The notes beneath the pieces are model-generated. The model searched no databases and was not told the DNA's origin. It saw nothing but the letters and a program-made list of their open reading frames with translations. The position numbers and the translations under genes were made by a program. 64,000 nucleotides of DNA from Blastocystis sp. Blastoise (lineage: Eukaryota > Protista > Bigyra: Opalinata): NCBI GenBank assembly GCA_039096225.1, contig JBBPEB010000034.1, positions 1,178,001 to 1,242,000 on the forward strand. The letters run 5' to 3'. Position 1 is the stretch's first letter, and every line of letters begins with the position of its first letter. This document shows, piece by piece, positions 21,031-44,980 of this stretch.

Positions 21031-21824
21031 GATAGGAAAATATTGATTTAAACAAGAATAACTAATATATAAATCAGGAAAGTATTTAATTTTTACTTAA
21101 ATAATACTTTTAAATGTTCTGTTTTGATTAAAAAAACTCCTTCAGTAACTTGTTGAAATTCTCAAATTTCCACGGAAAAATCAAGTTAGATACTTGGGTA
21201 GAGAAAAAGTTGCTATTTCATTTTACGATTATTTGGCGTTTTTTTTATAACCAGAAATATGACGTTTTAAAATACCATCAATAGGCGAAATGAAACACGA
21301 TTATTTGTACATTTTCTTGATCAGTTAAAAAATAATGAAAAACAATAGCAACTTTTCGTATTTTGAATCAGTTTAGGGTAAATACTTAATAAGAATTTAT
21401 ATACATATTTACATATATATATGATAAATTCTAAAGATAATAAGAAAATCTGTGATTCAAATGAGTAAATAATATTGATTGAATTATAATAAAAATAAGA
21501 AATATTCTTGTATATTTTATAAAAAATGACTTATTGTCGCAAAATAATTACGGTAAATTTTTAAAAATCTTGTTTCCACATATTTATATATTTCATTAAT
21601 TACAAGTTAACAAAGATATTTAGTAAAATTTTATTAGTATGTATGTGTTTTCTATACATTTCCGTACTTAAATAGAGTGCAATTTTTAAAAAATAGCCTA
21701 GATTATAAATAAATATTATAATTACATTAATAATATATTACTATAGACTAATAATATTGCTATATATTGTGTTACATCCAAACTCAAAGAGTCTAAAGTT
21801 TAAAATAAAACAGATCTTCAAGAA

Positions 21825-24719
<2,895 letters not shown>

Positions 24720-24768
24720 ATTAAAAAGGGTATGATCATACAATAAGATTTTAGCTAATAATAATTAA

Positions 24769-24852
24769 TTCTCTTCTAACTGAGGGTGTAATAATTTTGA
24801 TTTCTTTTTCTAAATTTATATTTTTAAGTGAATATTTATATACTTTTTTTTA
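24769..24852 (-). repeat. Inner segment of the hAT right TIR
   Basis: Reverse complement of 22122-22205. Confidence 0.95.
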
Positions 24853-26295
24853 GAGGCATTGTTAGAAATACCCAAAAAAACCATAATTATTTTAACCTGC
24901 CCAAAAAAAAATCGAATTGTTAGAAATACCCAAAATCTTTCAAAATTTTTGTTAAAATACCCAAAATTTTTACAAAATTGGTAGAAATACCCAACTGTTT
25001 ATTTTAGACTCTAAACGATTGGTGGTTTGAAAACACAAATTCTTCATAGCCAATTAAAATTCTTTTTATTTCTTTTGTCATTATTAGAAAAAATATACTC
25101 AAGAATATATTTATATTTTCTTTATTAAAGCTTACATAAAAATTTTGTAGTAATTAAAACATAAGAAATATTTTAATAGATTATTATAATAATTTAGAAA
25201 AGTAGTTATTTAATTTAAGATAAGCATTTTTATTTACAAATTAAATATAATTATGTCAAATTTTTAAATTAAGGATAGTATAAATACTTCAGGCACTTAT
25301 ATCGATTGATTAGTGTCATTTATAGTGTAATAATATATTGTATTGCTCTCGAATAAAGCTTTTAAAAACTACAATGTAATTTTTCATGATTTTTCATTTA
25401 TTAATCACTATAAAAATGAAATTTGTTGTCCAGAATCACAAAAATATACTTTATTTTAATTTTGACATATTTAGACAATTAAAGCTTTAATTACTGCATA
25501 TTTAACAACAAAGATATCTGTAAATCAATATTAGATTCATGTAGACTATTTTTATGTTATAATTTGGTAACTGATTCAGTTCAGCCACAACAAGAAGTGG
25601 AAATATGTTTTTGTTTGATTAAGGTGAACTATCATAAGTTTAAACATAGTGAATAAATAACAAAATTTGAGACTGTAAAAACATATGGAGTCAAAATTAT
25701 GTATGTAAAAAGTTTCAACTAGAAAATGTAGTTTTACTATATATGTAAAAGCTAGGGTATCGAATAAAAAAACAAAAAACCCCAAAAAAGAAGACTTGTT
25801 TACAGATGTTTCATTTCAAATTACCCGTTTATGTTCCATTTCCAAGGTGATGATGTTTCTGGATGGGTAGTCAAAAGATATTGTTGTCACGACTCTTCTG
25901 AGCAAACTTAAATAAATAAATTATATTCTTATATTAACATATTTATAGAAATGCAATCGTTTGTATATATTATATATCAAATGAAACAAAAAGCAAAAAA
26001 TAGATTATAAGTTGTTAAAAAATGTTAAAAATAAATTAAATGATTTAAAAGATAATACTAAACAATATATAGTGCTAAAAGAAAGAATAAAAGAAAACAA
26101 ATTAGACATATCATATGAACTATTAATATTTTTAATCAAGAATATATATATATGTATTACATGATTCTACATAAATATATTAATATATTAGATTTTCTAT
26201 TTTATACACAATATTTAATATATATAAATTTATATATATATGTATACATGTATACTATTCAATACATATGTATATCTATTCTATATACATATACA

Positions 26296-26361
<66 letters not shown>

Positions 26362-26619
26362 CATTCTATACATATGCTATTTATATCTATATATAGAATT
26401 CTAATATATCCGATTAAGTATATATATATGTTCAATATATATATAATATATGTTTTTCTATATATGTTATTCTTCATACTAATAAAAGTAACATATATAC
26501 ACAATTCTATTTATTGTTTTATATATCAATATATATATAATTCAATATATCAAATATTGTGTATAGCGTTTTAAAAAATGAGAATTCAACTTCAATTGAA
26601 TGAAAAAAACGATTCTTAG

Positions 26620-29600
26620 AATAATAGGAATAGGAAAATTATAATAAGAAGTGGTAGTAATATACGTAGATGAAGAATGATAATAGAAGCTGATAAAAAA
26701 AGTAGCAGCAGAAATAAAATGAGAAAGAGAAAAAGTAGAAGTAGAAGGACAAGGAGATATAGAAGAAGAAGAACAAGGACAAGGAAAAGGACAAGAATAA
26801 GACGAGTGAGAAGGAGAAGGAGAAGGACAAGGAGAAGAAGAAGAAGAAGAAGAAGAATAAGACGAGGGACAAGGACAAGGACAAGGACAAGAAGAAGAAG
26901 AATGACAAGGATAAGGACAAGAAGAAGGACAAGAAGAAGGACAAGGACAAGGACAAGGACAAGGACAATGAAAATGGCAAGAATAAGAATAAAAAGGATA
27001 AGGACAAGGACAAGGACAAAAAGAAGAAAGACAGGAGAAGAAGAAGGAGAAGAAGAAGAACAAGGAGAAGGAGAAATATAAGGATAAGAACATGAAAGAG
27101 AAAGATAAGCACGAGAAGAAGAAGAAAAAGAAGAAAGAGAAGAAAATAAGAATAAACCAAGAATAAGCATAATAAGAAAAACATCAGTAGAAGGTAGGAA
27201 TAAGTAGAATGAGAATGATTAGAAGTAGAAGTATAAGGATAATATAAGAAAAAGCAGACGGAGAAGGGAAAATATGTGGATGTAGAAGAAGAAAATGAGA
27301 ATAAAAGTGGAAGAAGAAGAGAATAAAAAGATAATAGGAAGGAGAAGGATAATAAGAGAATAAGAATGGCAAAGTGAAGGAGGGAAAAAAGAAAGAGAAG
27401 AAGAAAAATTATAAGAAGAAGACAAGAAGGAAAAAGAGAATAGAAGGAGAGGAACAAAATATGAATAAGAAGGAGAATAGGAAGGAGAAGGATAAGAAGG
27501 GGAAGAGGAAAAGAATGACAAAGAGAAGGAGGAGAAGGAAGAAAGAACAAGAAAAAGACGAATGGAAAAAGGAAAGAGAAGAGAAGAATAGCAAAGAGAA
27601 AGAGAAGTAGAAGTAGAAGTAGAAGAGGGAGAAGAAGGAGAAGTAGAAGAGGGAGGAGAAGGAGAAGGAGAAGGAGAAGGAGAAGGAAAAAGAAAAAGAA
27701 AAGGAAAAGGAGAAGGAGAATAAGAAGGAGAAGGAGAAGGAGAATGACAAGAATAAGAAGGAGAAGGAGAATGAAAAGGAGAAGGAGAAGGAGAAGGAGA
27801 AGGAGAAGGAGAAGGAGAAGGAGAAGGAGAAGGAGAAGGAGAATGACAAGAATAATAAGGAAACGGAGAATGAGAAAGAAAAAAAGAAAGAGAAAGAGAA
27901 AGAGAAGGAGAAGGAGAAGGAGAAGGAGAAGGAAAAAGAAAAAGAAAAGGAAAAGGAGGATAAGTAGAAGGAGAATGACAAAGACAAGGAGAATGAAAAG
28001 GAGAAGGAGAAGAAGGAGAAGGATAATAATAAGAAGAAGAAGGAGAAGGAGAAGGAGAATGACAAAGACAAGGAGAATGAAAAGGAGAAGAAGAAGAAGG
28101 AGAAGGATAATAATAATAAGAAGAAGGAGAAGGAGAAGGAGAACAAAAGGAAGAAGTAGAAGTAGAAGTAGAAGTAGAAGTATAAGGACAAGAATAAGAA
28201 TGACAAGGACAAGGACAAAGACAAGAAGAAGAAGAATGACAAGGAGAAGGACAAGAATAAGAATAAAAATAAGAAGGATAAGAAGAGAAGGATTAGGACA
28301 AGAATAAGAAGGATAAGGACAAGGACAAGAAGAAGAATGACAAGGACAAGGACAAAAAGAAAGACAAGGATAAGAAGAAGACGAAGGACAAGATGAAGGG
28401 CAAGAAGAAGAGCAAGAGGAAGAAGAAGAAAGAGAAGTAGAAGGACAATGACAATGACAATGACAATGATAATGACAATGGCAAGAAGAAGAAGTAAAAT
28501 AAGAAGAATAAGAAGAATAAGGATAAGAAGAAGTAGAAGGAGAAGGAGCAGGACAAGATAATGGACAAGAAAAAGAAGAAAAAGAAAAAGAAGAAAGAGA
28601 AGAAAATAAAAATAAACCAAGAATAAACATAATAAGAAAAACATCAGTAGAAGATAAGAATAAGTAGAATGAGAATGATTAGAAGTAGAAGTAGAAGTAT
28701 AAGGATAATATAAGAAAAAGAAGACGGAGAAGGGATAATATGTGGGTATAGAAGAAGAAATATGAGAATAAAAGTGGAAAAAGAAGAGACTCAAAAGAGA
28801 ATAGAAGGAGAGGAGCAACATATGAATAAGAAGGAGAATAGGAAAGAGAAAGAGAAGAAAGAGAAGAAGAAGGAGAAGGATAAGAAGATAAGAATGACTA
28901 AGAGAATGAGGAGAGGAAAGAGAAGAACGAGAAAAAATGAAGGAAAAAAAAAAGAGAAGAAGAAGAAGGAAAAGTGAAATTATAAAGCGAAGAAGAAACA
29001 GAAATAGAAAGAAAATGATAAGAAGAAGAAGAAGAAGAAGAAGACAGAGAAGAATATATGGAGCAGGAAGAGAATAAAAAGAGGGAGAAGGAGAGGAGCA
29101 AAGTATAAATAAGAAGGATAATAGGAAAGATAAGAAGGATAAGAAGGATAAGAAGGATAAGAAGGACAAGAAGGACAAGAAGGAGGAGGAGAAGAAGAAA
29201 AATTATAGGAAGAAGGATAAGAAGGAAAAAGAAAAGTAGGTTTTAAAAGAGGAAAGAGAAAGAGAAGGACAAGAAGGAAAAAAAGAGGAGAAGAAGAAAA
29301 ATTATAAGAAGAAGGATAAGAAGGACAAAGAGGATGAGGAGAAGAAAGAGAATAAAGAGAAGAAAAAGAATAAAGAGAAGAAAGAGAATAAAGAGAAAGA
29401 AAAGAAACAGACGAAGGAGAAGGACAAGAAGAAGGATAAGAAGAAGGACAAGAAGAAGGACAAGAAGAAGAAGAAGAAGAAGGATAAGAAGGAGAGGAAG
29501 GAATGCCAAGAAGAACAAGAGCAAGAACAAGAAGAAGAAGAAGAAGAAGAAGGATGAGAAGCAGAGGAAGGAGTGTCAAGAAGAAGAAGAACAAGAAGAA

Positions 29601-30860
29601 CAAGAAGAAGAAGAAGAATAAGAAAGAGAAGAAAAACAAGAAGAAGGATAAAGAAAAGTAAAAGTATAAATAGAAGGAGAATATAGAAAAGGAGATAGAG
29701 ATGAAGACAAAAAAGTAGACGTAGAAGGAGAAAAATAAATAAATAAAAGTATAGTAGTAGAAACAGAAGTATAAATAGAAGTATTAGGAATAAGAAAATG
29801 AGAATCATTAGAAGAAGAAAAATGAGAAGAAGAATGAGAAGAAGAATAAAAATAAGAATAAGAATAAGAAAAAGTGAAAAAGAAGAAGAAGAATGAGAAA
29901 TTGAATATAGAAAAAAGAAGAAGAAGATGAAAGAGAAAGATAATAGCAAGGAGAAGTATAAGTACAAGAAGACTGAGAAGAATAAAAAGTAGTAGAAGCA
30001 AAAGCACGAGTACGAGTAGGAGTAAAAGCAGAACTACAAGTAGATATATAAGCAGAAATATAAGTAGAATAATAAGAAGTATTATCAGTAGTAGTGTAGC
30101 TGTAGAAATAGAAGAAAAAATAAAAGAGTAGTAGTAGTAGAAGAAATATAAGTAGAAGTACAAGTAGGAATAGAAGAATGAAGGAAAGAAGGAAAGAAGG
30201 AAGAAGCTAAAGGAGAAGAATTGCAAGGAGAATAAGGAAAAAAAAAAAGGAACAAAATGGAATGGAAATGATAACGAGAGAAAAAAGAAAAGAAGAAGAA
30301 AAACAATAAGAATAAGAAGATGTAGAAGGATAATAAAAGAAGAAAAAACAATAATAATGAGAACAAGAAGTAAATCTATAATGAGAAGGAGAAGTGGAAA
30401 GGAAGTATAGTAGAGAAGAAGAATAATGAAAAGTAAAATAAGATGTAAAGGTGAAAGAAGCATAAGAAGAAGTAAAGTAGAAGAAAAAGAAGAATCATGA
30501 AAGGATAAGAAGAATGAAGAATAATGAAAAGGATAGGGATAAGAAGTATAATGAGAAGGACGAAGAAGTAATAGTAGAATTTGTGAAGAGGTAATAGTAA
30601 AGAAAAGAAAAATTAATATCTATACATAAAAGAAGAAAAACTAGAGTAAGATGTACAGTAGAATTATGAATGAAGAATGAAGAATAAAGAATAAAGAATT
30701 AAGATTAAGAATGAAGAATGAAGAATGAAGAATGAAGAATGAAGAATGAAGAATAAAGAATGAAGAATGAAGAATGAAGAATAAAGAATGAAGAATGAAG
30801 AATGAAGAATGAAGAATGAAGAATAAAGAATGAAGAATGAAGAATGAAGAATGAAGAATT
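26620..30860 (+). repeat. Purine-rich low-complexity tract (GAA, GGAGAA, GGACAA, AGTAGA units)
   Basis: About 4.2 kb dominated by A/G on the + strand. Confidence 0.95.
30668..30858 (+). repeat. 7-bp satellite (GAATGAA/GAATAAA)n
   Basis: Directly visible tandem array. Confidence 0.9.
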
Positions 30861-30994
30861 AATACCAATAAAACTAAAGAATATATAATATTATAAAAAT
30901 AGAATAATAATAATATTATAAAGACAAAAAATAACATATATATTATTAATAGTCAGTTAAAACAAACTAAATATATTATTAAATACATATATAC

Positions 30995-31467
30995 CTTAAT
31001 AAAGACTTGAATCATTGCAATCTGATTCCCAGGTTGTGCTTCAGTTTGATTGGTTTTACTAAAGAAATAAATACGTAGAATAAATTAAATAGATAAAAGT
31101 ATATATATATTAAAGAAACAACTAGATAGAAAAGTAGGAGCTAATTCAATTATAAAAATAATAATACTAATGAAAACAAAATAAATATGTTATGTGAATG
31201 ATAAAAACATACTAATAGCATAGAAATAAAACAGATATAGCAAAGAATAAACAAAATGAGAAAATGTAAAATAATTATATACCTTAGATTCATTAGTATT
31301 GTTTACCAAGACCTTTAGAGTTGATTTGAAACCATATGAAGCTTGTTCTGAATATCTAAACAATACGCAACCAATTGATCAACTGATTACTATATAAAAC
31401 AAAATATTTGAAGAGAGTAAACTATATAATATATATATTTATGACTAGAAAACATACGTAGATCCAT
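30995..31467 (-). pseudogene. Decayed multi-exon gene remnant, pointing left
   Basis: ATGGATCTAC|gtatg...tatag| exon structure with an in-frame TGA (MDLLIS*SIGCVLFRYSEQ...). Further exon-like island at 30995-31058. Confidence 0.45.
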
Positions 31468-31857
31468 TTTATATGTTTATAATGACAATATATGAAATAA
31501 ATCAATATTTGAATCTCAAGAAATAATCATTCTGAGGATGGAAACAGGGATAAATCAGTCTAAATAGCGGAAGCAACCTCTTTGATAAAAACTTTTTTGT
31601 GATTCAGTGAACAAGTTTTAAAAATAATTTCTAGAGATTCAAAGTATGGGATAAAAAGTCTTTTTTGATATGGTCCCTATTCTTAAAGTTTTTTAGAATT
31701 ACTTCAATCCGTGAAAATCTTATTCAGCATCAGCTTAAATGAACTGCTGAAAGAGTATATTTTTTAAATATTATTATATGGATTATTTAATTATTTAGAA
31801 GGTTATTTTATACTTTATATTTATATTATATTTTTATATGTATATTATTATAGATTA

Positions 31858-32305
31858 GGAATGAAATGAGCACAGATAATGGACCAATTGGTGATTCGTT
31901 TATTCTGGTATATGTTAATTTTATCTAATATTATTCATATAGGCTGAAGAGACTAGTTTGAAGAGCCTGTAAACGTTAGAAATTCATATTGGAAGAAGTT
32001 CCATTTGTCAACATTTCTTCACTGGAAGTCTTGATCAAATATGTTTAAGTGGTATGTTATTTTATATATATTTATCTATCTTATAATTATATAGTGAAGA
32101 GTTTGAATCAAAACAAAATGAATTACATTTTTCAGAAGATGTTGATATATTGGATGTTTTTTAAATTTATTCAACCTTGTTATTGTCTTTTAAGTTTATA
32201 ACTATATTATTTATAATGTATATTATCTACATATATATAGAAATGGTGAATGATTATCTATTTGAGTTCTTTTCTTTTCTTATTCAGCACCATCATTGAG
32301 TACTT

Positions 32306-32343
<38 letters not shown>

Positions 32344-32430
32344 TAATTATTATATCTTCTATAGATACAAGCAGAAAATAAATGATGATTATGTATCACA
32401 ATTCTAAAAATAATATAAATCAGTTAAAAG
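31858..32430 (+). pseudogene. Decayed multi-exon gene remnant, pointing right
   Basis: Exon-like islands bounded by tag|...|gtat with stops. They dissolve into (TA)n-rich DNA up to about 35100. Confidence 0.45.
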
Positions 32431-33026
32431 TATATATTTATTTTATTTTATTTATTGTTAGCTAAATATAATAATTTATAATTGTTTAATATATGTATAT
32501 TATATATGTATATATTATTTATTATCGTTTTTATTCTATTATATATATATATATAATATTATTCTTCATTTATTATTATATATAGATGAGATAATAATTA
32601 ATTCGACTATCTCCTCATTATACACACATTGTATATATATATCTACATATATTCTAATAATTTTTGTATATATTATTGTATTAATATATATATATATATA
32701 TATAATATTATTGATTATACTATATGAACACTATCTTCTTATCAATACAATTAATATTTATATATATTTTTATCAATATATGCATATTTCCTATTAACTT
32801 TTTTTATAATCTATTTAAAAATTTTGTATATAACATTTTATTACTATTATATATTCACTATTTGTTCTTATAATATATTATTTAATATGTTATATATATA
32901 TATATATATATATAGTACTATCACATTTATTATAAGTCTATTTCTCCTTAATCGATATTACTACATAATTTATATAATAAGATGTATATATATTCTTTTC
33001 TTTTCTGTTATTCTTTTTATTCTTTT

Positions 33027-33066
<40 letters not shown>

Positions 33067-34495
33067 ATTACTTTTTTTATTTATTCATTATTTATATATA
33101 AATAGTTATTGTGGTATACAAGATTAGTGGCTATTATGTATCTATATTATTCCGTATAAATTTTATTAACATATACATATATTTATATTTATATATATAT
33201 ATATGTATAGTATTCTATTCTGAGTTATGTACATCATTTTTTATTATATATAAATAAGGTATATAGTTTTATATATATTTTTATATTAAATTATAATCCC
33301 CTCTAGATAATTTATTTTATTGTTTTATAATTCATATAATTATTATTATTATTAATATTTATTATATATTCATCCTATATGTATAAATATATTTAATAAC
33401 TATCACATTATATGTGTTTATTTTTATTTATTTAGTTTTATAAGTTATATATATATATATATATATACTTAGAGATATATGTATATAAATTATTATTATG
33501 TATTATTTATTTTTATTATATTATTACCATAATATGTCTATTTGCTTACATATGTATATATAGTTGTTTTATTTCATATTCAAACGTTGCTTTAGTGAAC
33601 AAATATATATATTTATATATGATATTATAGAATTATTTTGTATTCATTATATATATATATATATTATGCATTAATTTTTACATGTTTGTTATACTTAATA
33701 TATATATATATATGTAATTATTTTATATCTATATATATACATATATATATATAGATATCATTGATATTAATATTCAAAGTATATATATATAAACATATAT
33801 AGACTTATATATAGTATTTTATATGTATTCATATTATAATATATTATGTATAGTTTAATAGTTATATGTAAGTCATCCTTTTATGTTTCTTATGAATTTA
33901 TATAAATATAGTTCTTTAATTCTGAATATGTATATATTATTATATATATCATCTTATTCTATATATATATATATATTATGTATTTTTTATTTAATATAAA
34001 AGATAATATTTTGTGTATTTAATATTTTATATCAATTATTCTTCTATTTAACTCTTTTATATCATTTATCTTTCTACAACTTTATTATTTATTATCTTTT
34101 TTAAATACCATATACCTTATAATTTATTATACGTACATAAAGTAATAGTCATAGCGCTTCTTTATGTATGTTTTATTCAATTATGTTAGTATATGTATTG
34201 TGGTATATATGTATATTAATTGTCGTTTATTTATATATCGTTTTGTATTTATTTTGAAATAAAGATTATATACATATAGTTATTATGTATATATATATAT
34301 ATATATATATATAACATTATTGATGTGAGCAATTTATTTTTCGTAATATATATTAAGTCTACTTCTCTTATATATAAATATATCTAATAATTTACTATAT
34401 GTTTTCCAACTTTATATATATATATATGTATTTACTATTTTCTATTATTATTATATATATATTGCTAATGAAATTAAGATATTGTCCAGGTAAGA

Positions 34496-34526
<31 letters not shown>

Positions 34527-35068
34527 TTGTTTTTATTCTTATAAGTATTATGTTCTTATATTATATTTAGATATGTTTTTTTCTTTTTGTTATTTTTTTT
34601 TAATTATACTGTAAATATAAATACATAACTTTCTACTCTGCTTATTACTTCTTTTATAGTATATATCTATATTTCTTTCTATAAATATGTCATTCATCTA
34701 TATGCTATTATATATATTTTAGAATCCAAGCTCCTAATAGAAACTACTATAATTAATGATGATACAACCTTTTTGGTATATACATATTTATACTATTATT
34801 AGTTTTTTATAACTTATTATGTAATATTTTATTAATATTTTAACCAAATTTATTTATATATTATTATTCATTTTCTTTATTCTCTAACTATTTATAGAAC
34901 ATATCCTTAGCTTGTCTCCTATGTATATATGGCTTTAAATATATATATATATATATTATATTCTCTTTTTATATCTCTGATACATTATACTTATCACATA
35001 TTAATAGTTATCTTTTATTATAAGGTTTTTATTATATAGATTATTATTAATAGGTATAATGGAGTATT

Positions 35069-35100
<32 letters not shown>

Positions 35101-35175
35101 TATAATTATATAATTATATTTTGGGTTTTTGTCTGTTAAACATATATACATGGTTATATTCAAATAATTAATATT

Positions 35176-35243
35176 CCTTAGACTGAATATGGTTAGTAAC
35201 AATCATTAATAGATTGTTATCAGGTTCAATTCCTGATCTAGGG
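35176..35243 (+). ncRNA. tRNA-like cloverleaf, copy 1
   Basis: CCTTAGA/TCTAGGG stem; CTGA-ATATGG-TTAG arm; TAACAATC-ATTAATA-GATTGTTA arm; TCAGG-TTCAATT-CCTGA T-arm. Confidence 0.7.
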
Positions 35244-36256
35244 TCATATATTATATTTTTTATAAAAAAATTTAAATATTTTTCTCTATAGATATTCTCA
35301 TTCATTAGAACCAGTATGAAAGGGTATATTGAGTTTCATGTAATTGAATAAACTCTATACATCGTTAGTCGCTCTTCTATATTGTTTTTAAATACCTTTA
35401 CTTAAAACCAAACACATTCACAATTACATTCGCCTATAATTTTCTATTCAATAATTTATTTTGTTAATCATTCTTCTAATCAATTCTACACACAAATAAA
35501 AAATAAATATTCATCAATAACACCTTGAAGTCTATAAACACGCAATGCATTCTTTGTCTATACTCTTAAAAAGCATTTCTACTGTTTATATTAACATGAT
35601 TGACACAAATAATCTATTCTAACATTTATAAACTACTTTCAAAACTTTTAAAGAACCTTGACAAATCTACATTACCTAGAAAACTATTATAATTAACTTT
35701 AGTTTATATAGGTCATAATTAAATTCAAATTACTAATAGAAAATTAAAATAACGACATTCTAACTCAATATATCAACTAGAAAAATCAATTGTGTTTGTA
35801 ACTTCTCTAAAATTGAATTAATTAGTGAAATATGTATTTAAATTAATGTTGAATTTAAATTCAAACACACACAAACTCACCTTTTCTGACAGTTCTACAC
35901 ATTTAGGCAATCTAGTGACTATCATATAATCGACTAATTTTTGTTGTCTTCATCAAGTCTAGTGATTTCCTCATGACCATAACCATTAATTTCATTTTAT
36001 GTAACACTCTATAAATAATTAATCAATTAACTAATTTTATTTACATAAATACATACTCCATCAACAACAAGAAGACATCATGAGTAAGAATAACGGTTTA
36101 AAGTATTTAAATAAAATAATAAATAATAAAAAATAGAAATATTAAGATTTCAATAAAATTTAATAAGTTAATTTATAGTGAAGTTTCAATAATCATATAA
36201 AAAATATGATTAATTTCGTTTTTGTATGTTTTAAGTATATATTTATCTATATATAG

Positions 36257-36638
36257 GCCCTAGGAGTATAGTAGAGTACCTTCCAGTCTCCATTGGCAGA
36301 TTGATCTGTTGTGCTATGTTCTCTTTCTCTATGGTGAGCTTGTCTGAGTGGTGTAAAGTGGTTGAGCTAGATGGTCTGCTATTGTATTGTGGTTTAAATG
36401 GGATGATGTGACGTCACCATACAAAACTATTTCTTTAGGCTTTCTCACTGAGTAGCAATTGATCGGTTATATTAACTGAGCGTGGCTTGATACTTTCAAA
36501 AAAAAAATTACTTAATTGGATAAATAGATTGGTCTTAAATTACAGAGAAGCATGGATCTCTTCACTTAATCACTACCTATACAACTCAAATGCTTATAAT
36601 TAGAGTTAGTTTGTATTAGTCATATTCAGATTCTAGAT
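36257..36638 (+). pseudogene. GC-richer exon-like remnant with stops and frameshifts
   Basis: Bounded by atatag| and |gtatat. Composition differs from the surroundings. No long open frame. Confidence 0.4.
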
Positions 36639-36921
36639 GTATATATTTTCTGTATTTATTTTCTTTATAATTATAATTATAATATTATATAGTATTTATA
36701 TAAGCTATTATATAGTTATTAAGCCTAGTTCTTGTTCTTCTTGTCACTAACTTCTTGGTTTTTCTTATTTATGTATATATATATATATATATAATTGACT
36801 TCTTTTATTTTGCTTATATATTATTATTTTCTTTATTATTAAGAATAAATTTTGTTCATATTTATTATTAGTTTAATTCAATATATGTATAGACTTATTT
36901 CTATTCTTCTCTTTTTTTATT

Positions 36922-36961
<40 letters not shown>

Positions 36962-36999
36962 TATATAGGCAAAACTTTTATATATTTGTTTTTTTTCAT

Positions 37000-39430
37000 T
37001 CTTATTTTCTCCTCTTGTCCTGAATTGGCCTTGTTCTCCTCTTCTCTCTTCCATTCATCTACTCTTCTAGTTTTTACTCAATTTTATTCTTATGCTCTTA
37101 TGTTATATAGAACAGTTATTGTTTTTCTTAATATTACTTTATAGTATGTTTTATTTCATGTTCTTCTATTCTATATTCTAGTTTTTCCTTCACTTTCTTC
37201 TTTCCTCCATTAATTATTACTGGTTCTTCTTCTCCTATCATTACATACTCTCTTCATTTCAATCTCTTTATCATGATCATCTTCTTTTTCATTTCCTTCT
37301 ACTTTTCCTTTTCCTATTCTTCTTCTCCATTTCCTTCTATATTATTACTTCTTTTTCTCATCTTCTTCCAATTATACTTTCTTTATTTCTTATTCATTTT
37401 AATTATTCATCTACACGTTCTTTCTTTATTACTTCTTCTTCTATATATCCTTATTCTCTGTCCCTTTGTTCATTCCCTTCTCGTTCTTCTTCATCTATTT
37501 ATCCTTCTTCTATTTATCCTTCTTCTATTTATTTTAATTCTGAATCACCTTCTTTCTCTCTCCTTCTGTTTCTTCTTCTTCTATTTGATCTTATTTTTCT
37601 TCTTCTCTTCTTCTTCTCTTTCTATACATTCTTCTTCTATATATTCTTTATCTCCTATCTTCTTCATCTGTATTTTCTCTTCTATTTATCCTTATTCTTA
37701 TTCTACATTTTCTCCATATCATTCTCCTCCTATATCTTCTATACCTCCTTTATCTCCTTATTCTTCGTCTATGTCTTCTATTCTTCTTCATCTTTTTTCT
37801 TCTTCTATATATGTATTCTACTTATTCTTCTCTATCATCGTTTATATATCTTTCTTCTATATTTTCTGCATCTACTTCTTCTTCTATATCTTCTATTTAT
37901 CATTATTTTCCAACATATTTTTCTATTGTACTTCTTCTTTTCTCTTCCTTCTCCTTCTTTTCTATATCTTCTGTTTATCTTATTCTTCGTCTATATATAA
38001 TTATTCTCTTTATTCTTCTTCTTTATATATATATTCTTCTTTTTCGATATATTCTTTTTTTTCTTTTCGCTCTTTTCCTTGTTCTCCTTCTCAATCTCCT
38101 TCTCTTCATTGATATCCTTCTTCTTCTTCTATTCATCTTTTTCTCCTTCTCCTTCTTCTTCTTCTCCTTCTCCTTCTTCTTCTTCTTCTTCTTCTACTTC
38201 TCCTTCTCCTTCTTCTTCTTCTTCTTCTTCTTCTTCTATTCATCTTCTTCTCCTCCTCTGTCTCCTTCTCCTTCTTCTTCTATTCATCATCATCATCATC
38301 ATCATCTTCTTCTTCTTCTTCTTCTTCTTCTTCTTCTCCTATTCATATTTCTTCTTCTTCTTCTTCTTCTTCTTCTTCTTCTTCTTCTCTTTCTTCTTCT
38401 TCTTCTATTCATCTTTCTTCTTCTATTCATATTTCTTCTTCTTCTTCATTTAATCCTTTTCTCCTCCTCTGTTTTCTTCTTCTTCTATTCATCTTCATCT
38501 CCTTCTCCTTTTCCTTCTATTCATCATCTTCTTCTTCTCTTTCTCCTTCTACTTCTTCTTCTCTTTCTCTTTCTTCTTCTTCTTCTTCTTCTTCTATTCA
38601 TCATCATCATCATCTTCTTCTTCTATTCATCTTTCTTCTTGTTCTTCATTTAATCCTTCTTCTTCTTCATTTAATGCTTCTTCTCCTCCTCTGTCTTCTT
38701 CTTCTATTTATCCTTCTTCTCTTTCTATTCTCCTATATATCCTTTATCTCCTGTTTTTCCTTCTCAATCTCCTTCTCTATATCTCTTTCTTTTTATCCTT
38801 TTTCCACTTTTTCTATATTTTTTGCTTCTTATCTTTCTATATCTTCTCTATATCATTCCTCTCCTTCTTCTTCAGCATCTTCTTTTTATATCTTATAATT
38901 GTTTCCTCTTTATATTATTCTCATTTTATTCCATTTCATCTATTTTTTTTTATCTAATTATTTTCAATATTTATTATACAGAATATCATTTATATTTAAT
39001 GTTTTTCACTTTCATTATCTTTTCCATATACATTATAGTCTTATTTGCTTTTCCTACATCTTCACTTGTTCTTCTTATGTGTATTCTCCTCATATTTTTA
39101 TTTCTTTTCTAATAGATTTTCCTTTATAGTTCTTCTAACTCTTCTCTACCTTCTTTCTTCTTTTTCTCTTCTACATGATTTTCTATTCTTCATCTTTCTT
39201 TTTTCTTTTTTATCTTCTTATCTTATTATCTATATGTGCTTCCTCTTCCTCTAATTCTTCTTTATACATATAAATTCTTTTCGCTCTTTATCCTTCTAAT
39301 CAATTCCTTCTTCTTCTCATTTAATTAATATTATTCTTCTTCTTAATTTATTTTCTCTTATTCTTCTTATTCTTGTCTTTAATTTTTTTCTATACACAGT
39401 TCCTGTCTTTTATTATCTTTTATATCTATA
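37000..39430 (+). repeat. Pyrimidine-rich low-complexity tract (TTC, TTCTCC, CAT units)
   Basis: About 2.4 kb dominated by T/C on the + strand, the compositional complement of 26620-30860. Confidence 0.95.
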
Positions 39431-39665
39431 TATCTATTTTCTCTTCATATTTTAATTATTTCTATCTGTTATACTAATTAATCTAATATTTATTTTTTAT
39501 TAATAAAAAGATTTTCCAATTTTTATTTCTTATTTATACTTATTATTTCATTAATTTATATACTACTTATTTATATATTTATTTTATATATTTTAATTTA
39601 TATATATATATATATATATATTGGATATTATGTATTTTAATATTATTATCATTATTATTATTACT

Positions 39666-39731
39666 CTTATGCTCTAGAAGGTGAGAGGCTATCATAATTA
39701 GATAGCAATCAGGTTCAACTCCTGACATAAG
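39666..39731 (+). ncRNA. tRNA-like cloverleaf, copy 2
   Basis: CTTATG/CATAAG; CTCT-AGAAGGTG-AGAG; GCTATC-ATAATTA-GATAGC; TCAGG-TTCAACT-CCTGA. Confidence 0.7.
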
Positions 39732-41034
39732 TCATTCCTTATATATATATATATATATTTTTATTTAATAAAAGTTTTAATTATATGTTCTTTTTACACT
39801 TATGAATGCATTTATTAAATTATTTATAGCTCTTCATCCTTCAAAACTTCATAGTTTCTGAAATGAGTTGTAATCTGTTTTATTCTCAACAGTGTATCGT
39901 ATTCAAAATATGTTAGAATTGAGTTAAATGCAGTTTTAAAACTTAGATTCATTTTTTATTTTCAAAATATACTCAAATACAGAGTCTATTTAGCAATCAT
40001 TAATACTTTAGCAACTGTAGTTTATTATTTTAAACTGAATTCTGGTCAGTATGCTCAACATAAGCAACCAAACACAACACATACACATTCATGATTTTTA
40101 AACAACATTTTCCATTTCGACATTTACTTGATCCATTATAAAACTATCTGTCCTTTTGATATAGTATCGAGAAACTAATATCATATACCAAACAAAACTT
40201 GTTAACTTGAATCTCGTCATCTATTAAATACTTTTCTTAATCAATTCACAGTTCATACTCTTAAAACAGTTATTTGAGATTAATATTTATATGTTTGTCT
40301 TTAAACAATGTAACTATGACATTGTAATAGTATATATGAAAATATAAAGAATCAACAAATCTGTTAATTATCAAAAAATAAGTTCTATTTTCTAAAAACA
40401 TCTTTATAATATTTATAAACTCATATACTATAAATACATAGATCTTATATAAAGTATTCATTGAGTAAATTAATTTGTCAGTAAATTAAAAGTATGTTAT
40501 ATAACGTAATTCTATGTTATCTTTTTAATGAAGTTTATTTCATAGCTGTTTATGGCTTATTTGTCTATCAAACTTATTTTTTAAAACAATTACAGACAAT
40601 TATGTTATGATCCTTGTCTATATTGTTATTCTATTGAATTAATAGTATAAATACAAGTTATATAACAAAATAAATGTATATATTGATTAAAATAAGGAAT
40701 GAATATAAATAAATAAAAATAGATAAAATTGCCAAAAAGCAAATTCTTAGAATTATATAGTACAATAAACGAACTTCTAATAGAAACTTAAAAATCGATT
40801 GATTGGATCAAATTGTCAAATCCTAACGTCATAATATGAATTATTCTTTTAATTTTTTATTAATTTAAATTCTAGAAATACATCTAATAAACACGGTTAT
40901 TATATAAATTAATACGATTGGACAATGAAATCAAAATGTTAACAGATATTTTTGGGTATTTCTACCAAATCATACAAAAAATTGGGTATGTATACAAATC
41001 AATAGGGAAATCTGGGTATTTCTAACATTTTTCC

Positions 41035-41255
41035 TTTTTTTTATCACAGAATATTTATTTTTATTAATTTTAGAACCTTGTTTTGCATCTAAATATTATA
41101 AAAATAAAATTTAAAACTCTAAAAAAAAATAATTTTATTACTTTCTTTAGTTTTTGGACCTGGCTTTATTTTTGGAGGTCTTCCAGGTTTCCTATGTTTT
41201 TTTGAATTTTTTGAAACTTTGAAACTTGTAGATTCCTGAGAATTTATTGATTCTA
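41035..41255 (-). repeat. Middle segment of the hAT right TIR
   Basis: Reverse complement of about 21910-22130. Confidence 0.95.
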
Positions 41256-41849
41256 CAAGATTGATTGTTAAACATCATTACTATATATATGAGAATAGGC
41301 AAAAAAATTCCCATTGGTCAGTTTTTGGAAAATGCATTTGATTGGCTAAGGTATACTATAGTTTGTAGCCTCAACTCCTCTAAACTTACGGGGAGTTAAC
41401 TTTTGGTTGAAACACAGTTCAATACGATATAACGTGTAGTTTTGCAACATATATTTGGATAAGCGATATTGTTTATAATTAAAAAGTTATTAATAAAAGA
41501 ACAGAAAATATGATTTTTGAGTCGTTTTTGATTGGCTCTTTGGGATGACCCCGATAAAAATTGTTGACCAGACAATTGGAAAATAAACATGGGGTAAACT
41601 TGATTTTTTCTCAATCCCACAATATACGTTATCCGTGTTTATTCTTTATATTTATCTATTTTTTAATACTTTTTCATATTGAACACGTGAGGCCTTAACG
41701 GTCAAATTTAGATTCTCAATTTGACATCATATTCTGATTCAGGAGGTCAAAAAACCTAGGTGTACCAATTTTGAGCTCCTGAGGACGATTTTTGAGTGAT
41801 CGATATTTTCTTCGATCTTCTTATAATTGACTAATATTGTAGTATTGTA

Positions 41850-43330
41850 ATCAATGGATCCTCAAACTACTATAGTTAAAACAAAGTTTTAAAATAACGA
41901 GTTTGAGTGTCACAATTTTGAAAAGTGTGAATTAAGTGGTCTTAGAGTAAGAGATTCAATATAATGACTTTTAATTAGTAAACTAGACTTATAACTCTAT
42001 ACTATGTTAAAAGAAGAGTCAAAATTATGAAGGTCAAAGTGTATGAGCAAATGACAAAATGTGTCTTAAAAAGTAAAAGGGTTTCTATATGTGTTTAGAA
42101 TCATATATTAAGTTTATTTTATGAATAAGAGCTTTAAATAAATAGTTTAAGGTTGTCAAATTTAAAAGAATGTGTAAAACATAGTCTTAGACTATGAATA
42201 AAAAATTTAGAGATATTAATTAGTATACAGCTGTAGTAGCTCTACAACATATCAAAAGTACAGTTAAAATAATTTTTAGAGAGTGGATGTGTGAAGGGTT
42301 GTGACTATTATTTAAAATTTATTTTTACTTCAGTTTATGTTAAATCGTGAATTTCGTGCACTGTAGAAAAATTGAGTCAAAAAATCAACTCTAAGGGTCA
42401 TAAATTTAAAAAAATGTAAAAATGAGTGACTTAGAGGACGAGATTCAATATTTGAGTGTTTATTCATTAAACTAGAGTGTATGAGCTATATTATGTTAAA
42501 AGGAGGGACAAAAATATTTTGATCAAAGTGTATGACCAAATGGTAAAGTGTCTTTAATAAGTCTAAAGTGTTGACTAATGTGCTCATATTGTCATATAAA
42601 GTCTACTATGTAAATATTAGCTTTTAAAAATATGTTTAAGCCTTTCAATTAGTAAAAATATGTTCAAAGTAAGTGATAAAATGAGAATTTTAAGAAACGA
42701 GATATTATTTAGTATATACTAAGACACGCTCTATAACATATCAAAAATATAGCAAAATCTATTTTTAGAGAGTGGATGTGTAAAGGGTTGTGAGAGTTAT
42801 TGAAAAAATATTTTTCACTCAGTTTATCCAAAATGACGTTTTTGGAACACTGTAGAAAAATTAACTTCAGAAATCAACTCTAAGGGTCTTAATTTTTAAA
42901 AATGTGAAAATGATTGACTTAGAGGACGAGATTCAAAATTCCCTCTCACTTTCATATAACTAGACCACACACTCTATATTATGTCAAAAGGAGGGAAGAA
43001 AATATTTTGGTCGAAGTAAATGAGCAAATGCAAAAGGTTTATAAAATGTCTTAAAGTGATGACCAATGTGTAGCTATGGTCATATTAAGTAAAGTGTGTA
43101 AATATTAGCATTTAAAAATGAGTTTAAGTGTCTTAACTTTTCATAATGTGTCAAGAAGGGTCTTTAAGAAAGAGATTCAAAACATTTGCTTTTATTTAAT
43201 AAATTGTATAATAAACTCTATACTATATCAAAAGACTGACGGAAATTATTCTGATACAGTGGATCTTGAATGGGTAAAGTCTCTTTAAAAGTTACTATTT
43301 TGAGTTATTTATGTTAAAATCATTATTTGA
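41850..43330 (+). repeat. Tandem array inside the Helitron: ~244-bp monomers arranged as ~489-bp dimers (about 3 dimers)
   Basis: GACTTAGAGGACGAGATTCAA near 42428 and 42917, with a variant near 41940. AGAGTGGATGTG near 42280 and 42768. A CTATA(C/T)TAT(G/A)T(T/C)AAAAG-like motif recurs about every 244 bp from 41998 to 43217. Confidence 0.8.
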
Positions 43331-43703
43331 GACGAATATAAAAATATTAACTTTTTAAATAATGTTTTAGTTGTCAAAGTGACAATGAATGTTGACTTTG
43401 TTATACTAAAAACTTCAAAATTCTTTTAAGAAGTATTAAAATGAGTTAAAATTATTTTATTACGTTTATTTAAATGAATTTTATGAATTAAAAATTACTC
43501 AAGAGTACTTCACATTATGACTCATTTCTAAAGTTATTGACTTTAAAAACTCAAAGAATGTTTTAAACAGTTGTTTAATTATTACTAAATATAAAATATA
43601 TTTAAAAAATAAATTGTTGTGAAAAAATTGACTTAGAAAGTGATTTTAATTAAAAAATAATTTTTTCTCTTTTTTAATTTCTTATTTAAAAAGTCTAAAA
43701 TAA

Positions 43704-43771
43704 TCTTATATCAGGAATTGAACCTGATTACAATCATAAAATAATTGTAACTCTCCATATAGAGTATAAGA
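43704..43771 (-). ncRNA. tRNA-like cloverleaf, copy 3 (inside the Helitron)
   Basis: Minus strand: TCTTATA/TATAAGA; CTCT-ATATGG-AGAG; TTACAATT-ATTTTAT-GATTGTAA; TCAGG-TTCAATT-CCTGA. Confidence 0.7.
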
Positions 43772-43984
43772 AATTAATATTTAATAAATAATAAATAATA
43801 TATATAATATATAATATATAATATATAATATATAATAAATGACTCATATTAAAAACTATATATATATAATATATAAGATAAAAGATAATAAATATTTTTT
43901 ATATACTCTTTATGCAGCCGCGGTCCGGGGCCGTTAGGCACTGGACCTGCGGCGTGACCCTAGTATTTTATAATAATAATATAC

Positions 43985-44703
43985 CTATTTCATTCAATTT
44001 TATCGAAGGGCCTCTTAATTTGTAAACCTTTCGGGGAGGTGAAACTAAGTTATTTGAAGAATTATAATTCATTTCTTGAAGATCTGTTTTATTTTAAACT
44101 TTAGACTCTTTGAGTTTGGATGTAACACAATATATAGCAATATTATTAGTCTATAGTAATATATTATTAATGTAATTATAGTATTTATTTATAATCTAGG
44201 CTATTTTTTAAAAATTGCACTCTATTTAAGTACGGAAATGTATAGAAAACACATACATACTAATAAAATTTTACTAAATATCTTTGTTAACTTGTAATTA
44301 ATGAAATATATAAATATGTGGAAACAAGATTTTTAAAAATTTACCGTAATTATTTTGCGACAATAAGTCATTTTTTATAAAATATACAAGAATATTTCTT
44401 ATTTTTATTATAATTCAATCAATATTATTTACTCATTTGAATCACAGATTTTCTTATTATCTTTAGAATTTATCATATATATATGTAAATATGTATATAA
44501 ATTCTTATTAAGTATTTACCCTAAACTGATTCAAAATACGAAAAGTTGCTATTGTTTTTCATTATTTTTTAACTGATCAAGAAAATGTACAAATAATCGT
44601 GTTTCATTTCGCCTATTGATGGTATTTTAAAACGTCATATTTCTGGTTATAAAAAAAACGCCAAATAATCGTAAAATGAAATAGCAACTTTTTCTCTACC
44701 CAA
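43985..44703 (-). repeat. Outer segment of the hAT right TIR
   Basis: Near-perfect reverse complement of 21194-21912. One substitution noticed near 44181. Confidence 0.95.
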
Positions 44704-44980
44704 TTAGATACAGAAAAATAATTTTTCCATAAAAAATCTTTAAGTAATGCGTATTAAAAAAAAAAATGAATAATTGTGAAAATATTGATTTTGTAAGACA
44801 ATTATTATTATTTCTCGTGATTATTATTCTTTAGATTTCAAGAAATCGTTTTTCTTTTAAAAAATTATATTTTTGTGAATTCTTCCAATTTAAAAAAAGG
44901 TTGAAATTTTTATACTATTCTACATTATGATAAGAATGATCTTAATCTAATTATTGTAAAATTATAGTCAAATTGAGGTA

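Follow-up and report, generated by a model that had tools for sequence, protein, structure and literature searches.

The closest described systems to the element reported here are mascRNA and menRNA, the tRNA-like RNAs of the vertebrate long non-coding RNAs (lncRNAs) MALAT1 and NEAT1. They have no linker residues, start their D stem at position 8 and carry a longer anticodon-like stem, and their elbow, made of two D-loop guanines and the T-loop, is recognised by RNase P and RNase Z without the RNA being aminoacylated (PMC11693755). MALAT1 and NEAT1 have been described as the only lncRNAs matured by the tRNA machinery (PMC12941219). The GUT15 tRNA-like RNA of Arabidopsis is intronic and depends on an upstream RNA polymerase II (Pol II) promoter, not being an autonomous RNA polymerase III (Pol III) gene (PMC6152437). 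Here we describe a family of tRNA-like cloverleaf elements from the DNA transposons of the stramenopile Blastocystis sp. Blastoise. The window analysed was a stretch of 64,000 nt on contig 26 (assembly GCA_039096225.1, JBBPEB010000034.1, positions 1,178,001 to 1,242,000, forward strand), in which three copies were found. Our results support that the cloverleaf is a selected, non-decoding structure borne by mobile DNA. By analogy to mascRNA and menRNA, we see about an even chance that it is a cis-acting cut signal for RNase P and RNase Z, ending transposon transcripts.

Copy 1 (35176–35243, plus strand, type C) had a 7-bp acceptor stem, no linker, a 4-bp D stem with GG in its loop, an 8-bp anticodon-like stem and a T-arm with a Pol III B-box. 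Copy 2 (39665–39732, plus strand, type B') terminated a pyrimidine-rich tract, 1.3 kb inside the right end of a Mutator-like element (MULE); its coordinates are 39666–39731 when only the six paired acceptor bases are counted. Copy 3 (43704–43771, minus strand, type A) was antisense to a Helitron, 192 nt inside its 3' end. The four-arm cloverleaf was the minimum free energy structure of each copy (z-scores of −3.1, −2.6 and −3.3 for copies 1, 2 and 3). On the opposite strand, copies 1 and 3 folded less well and copy 2 formed a rod, and the D-loop GG and T-loop TTCAAYT followed each other in tRNA order only on the strands given here, in all three copies. An earlier note, made from the sequence alone, had located the three cloverleaves, listed their stem pairs and named the folding strand, and was correct in each of these points.

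A covariance model built from 21 variants scored the three copies with 87, 80 and 87 bits, respectively, and recognised no further real member in the window. The T-arm 17-mer had three exact matches in the window, while 0.27 were expected even at three mismatches. Genome-wide (33.3 Mb in 34 contigs, about 22% GC, short AT-rich introns), the 17-mer had 243 exact matches and its reversed control none; a looser 13-nt core had 315 matches against one for the control, some of them being true tRNAs. The family thus has roughly 250–300 copies, far beyond the three from which the earlier note had proposed to build a covariance model. Seven types were distinguished among the loci examined: A (copy 3), B, B' (copy 2), C (copy 1), D, E and F, with one example each for D, E and F.

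All types could be parsed into a 7-bp acceptor, zero connector, a 4-bp D stem whose loop of 5–6 nt has GG at its end, an anticodon-like arm with a stem of about 7–9 bp and a 5–7 nt loop of free sequence, a variable region of 0–1 nt, and a 5-bp T stem that carries a TTCAAHT loop and stacks on the 3' strand of the acceptor. Paired cells in the alignment reached 94%, compared with ~42% in slid controls, and two-sided changes were found in 13 of the 24 pairs, in the acceptor, D and anticodon-like stems. Raw covariation counts are inflated by kinship, therefore changes were counted along a minimum spanning tree of 15 variants. This tree had 24 two-sided stem changes, against a null mean of 10.5 and a maximum of 21 in 200,000 draws, and 18 of the 24 kept pairing. 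The compensatory changes seen by the earlier note are thus confirmed by a tree-aware count. Covariation in three stems points toward an RNA-like fold under selection, and not merely a DNA box. Position 7 covaried with position 62 of the 68-nt element, indicating that the acceptor runs directly into the D stem.

The elements were better conserved than their surroundings. Two type-A copies were 93% identical in the element and 72% in the flanks. For type C, compared between MULE subfamilies (copy 1 and locus L044), identity was 94% in the element and 78–86% in the flanks, and the differences included one compensatory and two pair-preserving changes. The T-arm was nearly invariant in the alignment, as noted earlier, partly as an ascertainment effect, because its pattern was used to collect the copies. 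Two further sets of pairs were almost invariant in sequence in all types, at the tip of the anticodon-like stem (alignment columns 28–29/37–38) and at the first two positions of the D stem (8–9/20–21), which hints at tertiary contacts or at recognition by a protein other than RNase P and RNase Z.

The tRNA set of the genome is canonical, and the 63 RF00005 matches scored included no copy of the family. Rfam scans of the region at three scales, down to a 200-nt query, gave no tRNA, mascRNA or other credible match. We rejected a decoding tRNA, because the cloverleaf lacks the U8–N9 connector and any variable loop beyond 0–1 nt, has 7–9 bp instead of 5 bp in its anticodon stem, and has 5–7 nt of free sequence in place of a 7-nt loop with a conserved anticodon and a purine at position 37. 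Across the variants, position 37 was often a pyrimidine. ARAGORN called only B' copies, labelling copy 2 as tRNA-Ile(AAT) and a close paralogue as tRNA-Val, with the apparent anticodon changing from AAT to AAC. We consider the label of copy 2 a miscall. The expectation of the earlier note that the elements are unlikely to decode was therefore borne out, and its alternative of ordinary host tRNA genes or pseudogenes found no match among the scored tRNAs.

Copy 3 is carried by a non-autonomous Helitron of 2.7 kb (41275–43963, plus strand), with a 5' TC, a GC-rich 3' hairpin followed by CTAG, an A|T insertion site and a 488-bp internal tandem repeat. Its terminal hairpin and CTAG (43915–43963, plus strand) belong to a motif with 106 copies in the genome. 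The 5' TC, the 3' hairpin with CTRR, the A|T site, the lack of a target site duplication (TSD) and the presence of Rep/Hel genes in the genome are all in agreement with a Helitron. The cloverleaf starts 192 nt from the CTAG end and is antisense, close to the 190 nt estimated before. Helitron relatives of 6.5–6.9 kb had two cloverleaves 4.2–4.3 kb apart, one of type A near the 3' end and one of type B about 2–2.4 kb from the 5' end, both antisense.

Co-location with Helitron 3' ends was tallied by hand from coordinate lists for contigs 1–13, following a suggestion in the earlier note. A cloverleaf or its T-arm was found within 750 nt in 44 of the 47 ends, antisense in 44 of 44, at distances varying between 170 and 750 nt. 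At least one Rep/Hel-linked 3' end, at C4:1533814, was without a cloverleaf. In at least five Helitrons that encode Rep/Hel, the strand opposite to the Rep domain bore a cloverleaf, located ~6 kb upstream of this domain. In the three of these loci that were examined in sequence, the cloverleaf was of type B and continued into the Helitron 5' region. A Helitron lineage, as proposed earlier, thus describes copy 3 and most of the 3' ends, while copies 1 and 2 now reside in a 17-copy Mutator-like family.

The non-autonomous Helitrons with cloverleaves were often inserted in long open reading frames of other transposons, including the PIF1 helicase gene of a Helitron (L047:1–1761, L033, L037). One Helitron cargo (L034:3830–5040, minus strand) had ~10 short repeated exons of 48–72 nt with regular introns and no frame open throughout, and is either the decayed gene of a repeat protein or a non-coding RNA that undergoes splicing. 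In the minus-strand cargo unit of a 6.6-kb Helitron (L047), which has many exons, one copy was precisely without the first intron, due either to intron loss or to a deletion between short repeats.

Copies 1 and 2 are carried by a MULE of 16.2 kb (24853–41034, plus strand), a shorter copy without the transposase domain, having imperfect G-terminal terminal inverted repeats (TIRs) and a 9-bp TSD. The duplication was backed by an empty site with a single 9-mer, within the window. Besides TIRs and TSD, the assignment to MULEs is based on the MULE transposase found within the family: PF10551 was detected in seven copies, on the cloverleaf strand. In the family, 17 left ends were counted and 16 of them had a matching right end; the spans were 15.7–23.8 kb. 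The B' cloverleaf was located 1.30–1.35 kb inside the right end in 15 of the 16, pointing outward.

The stretch downstream of copy 2 (39733–40630, plus strand) had remote homology to the Helitron internal repeat, with z-scores of 6.9–8.2 against type-A downstream regions, including the one downstream of copy 3. Copy 2 has thus probably entered the MULE with old Helitron DNA, remaining intact while its flanks decayed. The earlier statement that the flanks are poorly conserved is true in part, this homology being what it had missed. Beside copy 1, Helitron homology was not demonstrable (z at most 4.7). An origin of the entire stretch between copies 1 and 2 from an old Helitron A–B cassette was also tested and rejected: outside the flank of copy 2 it had no support, and only low-complexity matches were obtained. 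Types D and E (L008, L012) were found 1.3–1.4 kb from a shared CAGGGTTCGCCA motif resembling a hAT-type terminus, which suggests further transposon carriers.

Several types stand at the end of strand-skewed units. Upstream of copy 2 there was a potentially transcribed unit (36235–39664, plus strand), formed by an exon-like relic and then a C/T-rich tract (pyrimidine fraction of 0.67–0.92), and its skew stopped at the cloverleaf. On the cloverleaf strand, the pyrimidine fraction dropped from 0.8–0.9 upstream to 0.5–0.6 downstream of B and B', in both transposon classes; C and F showed a slight drop, and A none. Spliced models were inspected one exon at a time. Across Helitron subfamilies of ~80% identity, the cloverleaf strand upstream of type B retained donor- and acceptor-like signals, while frame-breaking indels were present in the exon-like pieces. 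On the other strand, a many-exon unit pointed away from the same intergenic stretch. This arrangement suggests a divergent promoter, whose antisense non-coding transcript may end at the type-B cloverleaf.

With mascRNA and menRNA the cloverleaf shares the linker-less four-way junction, the 7-bp acceptor, the D stem from position 8, the GG in the D-loop, and a long anticodon-like stem running into a canonical T-arm, without a usable anticodon. It differs from them by its length (68 nt vs. 57–58 nt), its 8-bp arm and AU-rich sequence, by having no upstream triple helix, and by its ~250–300 copies on stramenopile DNA transposons, in contrast to single-copy vertebrate loci. In a genome search with RF01684 the best score was 26.9 bits, for a gathering threshold of 42.5, and no family copy was among the weak matches. 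With this threshold unreached, the triple helix missing, and size and sequence being different, the cloverleaf is not a member of the mascRNA family. Judging by the analogy in structure, it probably works like mascRNA, and convergence is a more likely origin of the likeness than descent.

Other tRNA-like structures are less close. tRNA-Pyl and mammalian mitochondrial tRNA-Ser(UCN) offset a shortened connector by a longer anticodon stem. They have in common with canonical tRNAs (RF00005) and with the cloverleaf the acceptor, the T-arm and the elbow bases; they differ from the latter by one connector nucleotide, a variable loop and an anticodon loop fixed at 7 nt, the cloverleaf having zero connector and a loop free in size and sequence. 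The mitochondrial parallel drawn in the earlier note is valid for the short connector and the longer stem, the closest structural parallel being mascRNA/menRNA. If released from a Pol II non-coding transcript, as proposed below, the cloverleaf would resemble GUT15 as a non-decoding tRNA-like RNA; unlike the intronic, single-locus GUT15, it is transposon-borne and no consistent host intron was found. A GUT15-like release from an intron was not adopted, acceptors being present downstream of several types and donors being inconsistent. Structured RNAs that define the transcript ends of mobile elements are known as the self-cleaving ribozymes of retrozymes and long interspersed nuclear elements (LINEs), and mitochondrial tRNA punctuation uses the tRNA fold as a cut signal. 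In contrast to the retrozyme and LINE ribozymes, the cloverleaf would borrow host RNase P and RNase Z instead of cleaving itself, and its carriers are DNA transposons without an RNA intermediate.

From the structure, the placement in the transposons, the orientation and the position at the end of strand-skewed units, we infer transcription, cleavage and a benefit to the transposon, as follows. The cloverleaf would be transcribed within a longer Pol II RNA, either one of the transposon itself or one reaching it by read-through from the host. This RNA would fold into a linker-less L-shape, with the D-loop GG touching the T-loop, and the 5' and 3' borders of the cloverleaf would be cut by the RNase P and RNase Z of the host. 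The upstream RNA would be ended without the normal poly(A) route and the downstream end left unprotected, with transcription being stopped or RNA being cleared at fixed points. Because there is no triple-helix motif upstream, cleavage would more likely end and clear the RNA than stabilise it. In Helitrons, type B may halt the divergent antisense transcript before the 5' part, and type A may halt incoming antisense read-through at the 3' end; in the MULE, transcripts may be stopped before the right TIR. The position opposite to the Rep strand, ~6 kb upstream, in the Rep/Hel-encoding Helitrons fits with the end of a divergent transcript. With more reserve, and at somewhat less than an even chance, we propose a convergent mascRNA-like module, by which DNA transposons would have their own transcripts, as well as incoming ones, cut at defined points by the RNase P and RNase Z of the host. 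Such a module would amount to a portable insulator at the RNA level, passed between superfamilies and maintained by selection, shielding transposase genes and termini from antisense or read-through RNA.

Several results weigh against cutting by RNase P and RNase Z. The search for the host RNase P gave no match for RF00009, in a search that was uninformative, and a best E-value of 0.009 for PRORP. No MALAT1-type triple-helix motif was found by inspection in the 45 nt upstream of all types, and a 20-kb scan gave no Rfam match upstream of copy 2. Type A has only 170–750 nt of element upstream and no strand skew, therefore it would need host read-through. The MULE also has a purine-rich field of 4.5 kb (26500–31000; pyrimidine-rich on the minus strand), which mirrors the one before copy 2 and has no cloverleaf at its end. 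In addition, the perfect B-box, the partial A-box and the T5 runs described in the following fit Pol III as well.

The main rival explanation, which we hold less likely, is an autonomous Pol III gene, in which the internal B-box, a degenerate A-box and a TATA-rich upstream tract would drive a non-decoding small RNA. This RNA would be matured like a tRNA and would work in trans, for instance as a decoy for factors that bind tRNAs or act in silencing, with local Pol III occupancy as a side benefit. The B-box GGTTCAAHTCC was perfect in all copies, the A-box matched in 5–7 of 8 positions across types (7 of 8 in B and B'), and (TA)n tracts were present upstream. A T5 run was found 1–12 nt downstream of B, C, D, E and some A (within 15 nt; background 9%). 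Maturation of such an RNA needs the whole cloverleaf, which would explain the covariation equally well, and type A, without an upstream unit, would be accounted for. On the other side, four type-A subtypes, several of them young, and type F had no T4 run within 65–144 nt, which argues against an obligatory Pol III terminator, and G10 of the A-box was replaced in every type. A Pol III gene also leaves unexplained the skew ending at B and B' and the fixed orientation against the Helitron, and an RNA acting in trans needs neither two copies per element nor retention in non-autonomous elements. Across types, the two models do not exclude each other. A sigma-70 promoter scan gave results at chance level and is not applicable here.

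Among the roles suggested by the earlier note, an RNA-processing signal fits best. A DNA-level TFIIIC/B-box barrier or insulator against heterochromatin, with the cloverleaf as leftover of a tRNA ancestor, is unlikely. The conserved B-box and the paired copies bracketing ~4.2 kb of cargo, in Helitrons and in the MULE, speak for it. Since TFIIIC binding requires only the boxes, a barrier alone fails to explain the strict orientation, or why pairing was kept in 18 two-sided changes of the acceptor and anticodon-like stems. Short interspersed nuclear element (SINE) heads derived from tRNAs, tRNA genes and extra TFIIIC (ETC) barrier sites likewise place a B-box inside mobile DNA; SINE heads and ETC sites are not known to keep a covarying cloverleaf. 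Even less probable is a single-stranded DNA structure for rolling-circle transposition of Helitrons, serving in priming, pausing or Rep recognition. Helitrons have single-stranded DNA intermediates, and the place near the 3' end was fixed in 44 of the 47 cases; however, the distance to the end is variable, the Rep/Hel-linked end at C4:1533814 lacks a cloverleaf, and such a structure would have no use for the GG and T-loop bases specific to tRNAs. The cloverleaf has also stayed intact in a cut-and-paste MULE family without recognisable Helitron termini, as seen for copy 1 and L044. Neither this retention nor the second copy, located ~2 kb from the Helitron 5' end, is explained by the second-strand priming considered in the earlier note. 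Hitch-hiking of a tRNA gene, ordinary or decayed, or of a SINE head in the transposons is very improbable. The ARAGORN labels of the B' copies and the canonical T-arm are in its favour, yet the missing linker, the varying loop size, the shifting anticodon and the absence of the family from the tRNA matches are not, and decay would break stem pairs, not compensate them. Unlike SINEs, the cloverleaf has no poly(A) tail or TSD around it and moves as Helitron or MULE cargo.

Literature searches gave no report of such an element, or of a selected non-decoding small RNA common to Helitrons and MULEs, which the family would represent even if it were transcribed by Pol III. The family is real, selected and apparently undescribed. 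If RNase P and RNase Z do cut the cloverleaf, the existence of hundreds of linker-less mimics with covarying stems would indicate that evolution has converged on this fold as a minimal solution for recognition by the two enzymes, and the family would offer a ready-made mutational series on what the elbow requires. It would also point to a means by which DNA transposons, lacking an RNA intermediate, control their transcripts with borrowed tRNA enzymes of the host.

Both the MULE and the Helitron are nested inside an outer hAT-like element with long TIRs (21191–44706), which had a weak PF05699 match. Its two parts (21191–24852 and 41035–44706) carry TIRs of ~0.9–1 kb, and (TAT)n repeats have enlarged the introns of its transposase. 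The Helitron is inserted in a short segment present in the right TIR and missing from the left one.

The pattern scan of viral contigs gave no relatives of the cloverleaf, and the six metagenome contigs retrieved were rejected, as all were prokaryotic or phage tRNA clusters with at most 28 bits, compared with 76–93 for true members. In phage-like or bacterial tRNA clusters from the metagenomes, an atypical tRNA-like element adjoined tRNA-Met (L051:391–466, L052:11117–11192, L053:654–729, L054:1655–1730 and L055:3040–3115). It had an acceptor and a T-arm, an odd D/anticodon region and no ARAGORN call, and is unrelated to the cloverleaf family (at most 27 bits). In the Blastocystis genome, contigs C9 and C12 had dense tRNA clusters with mirrored spacing, probably the genome of a mitochondrion-related organelle present twice.

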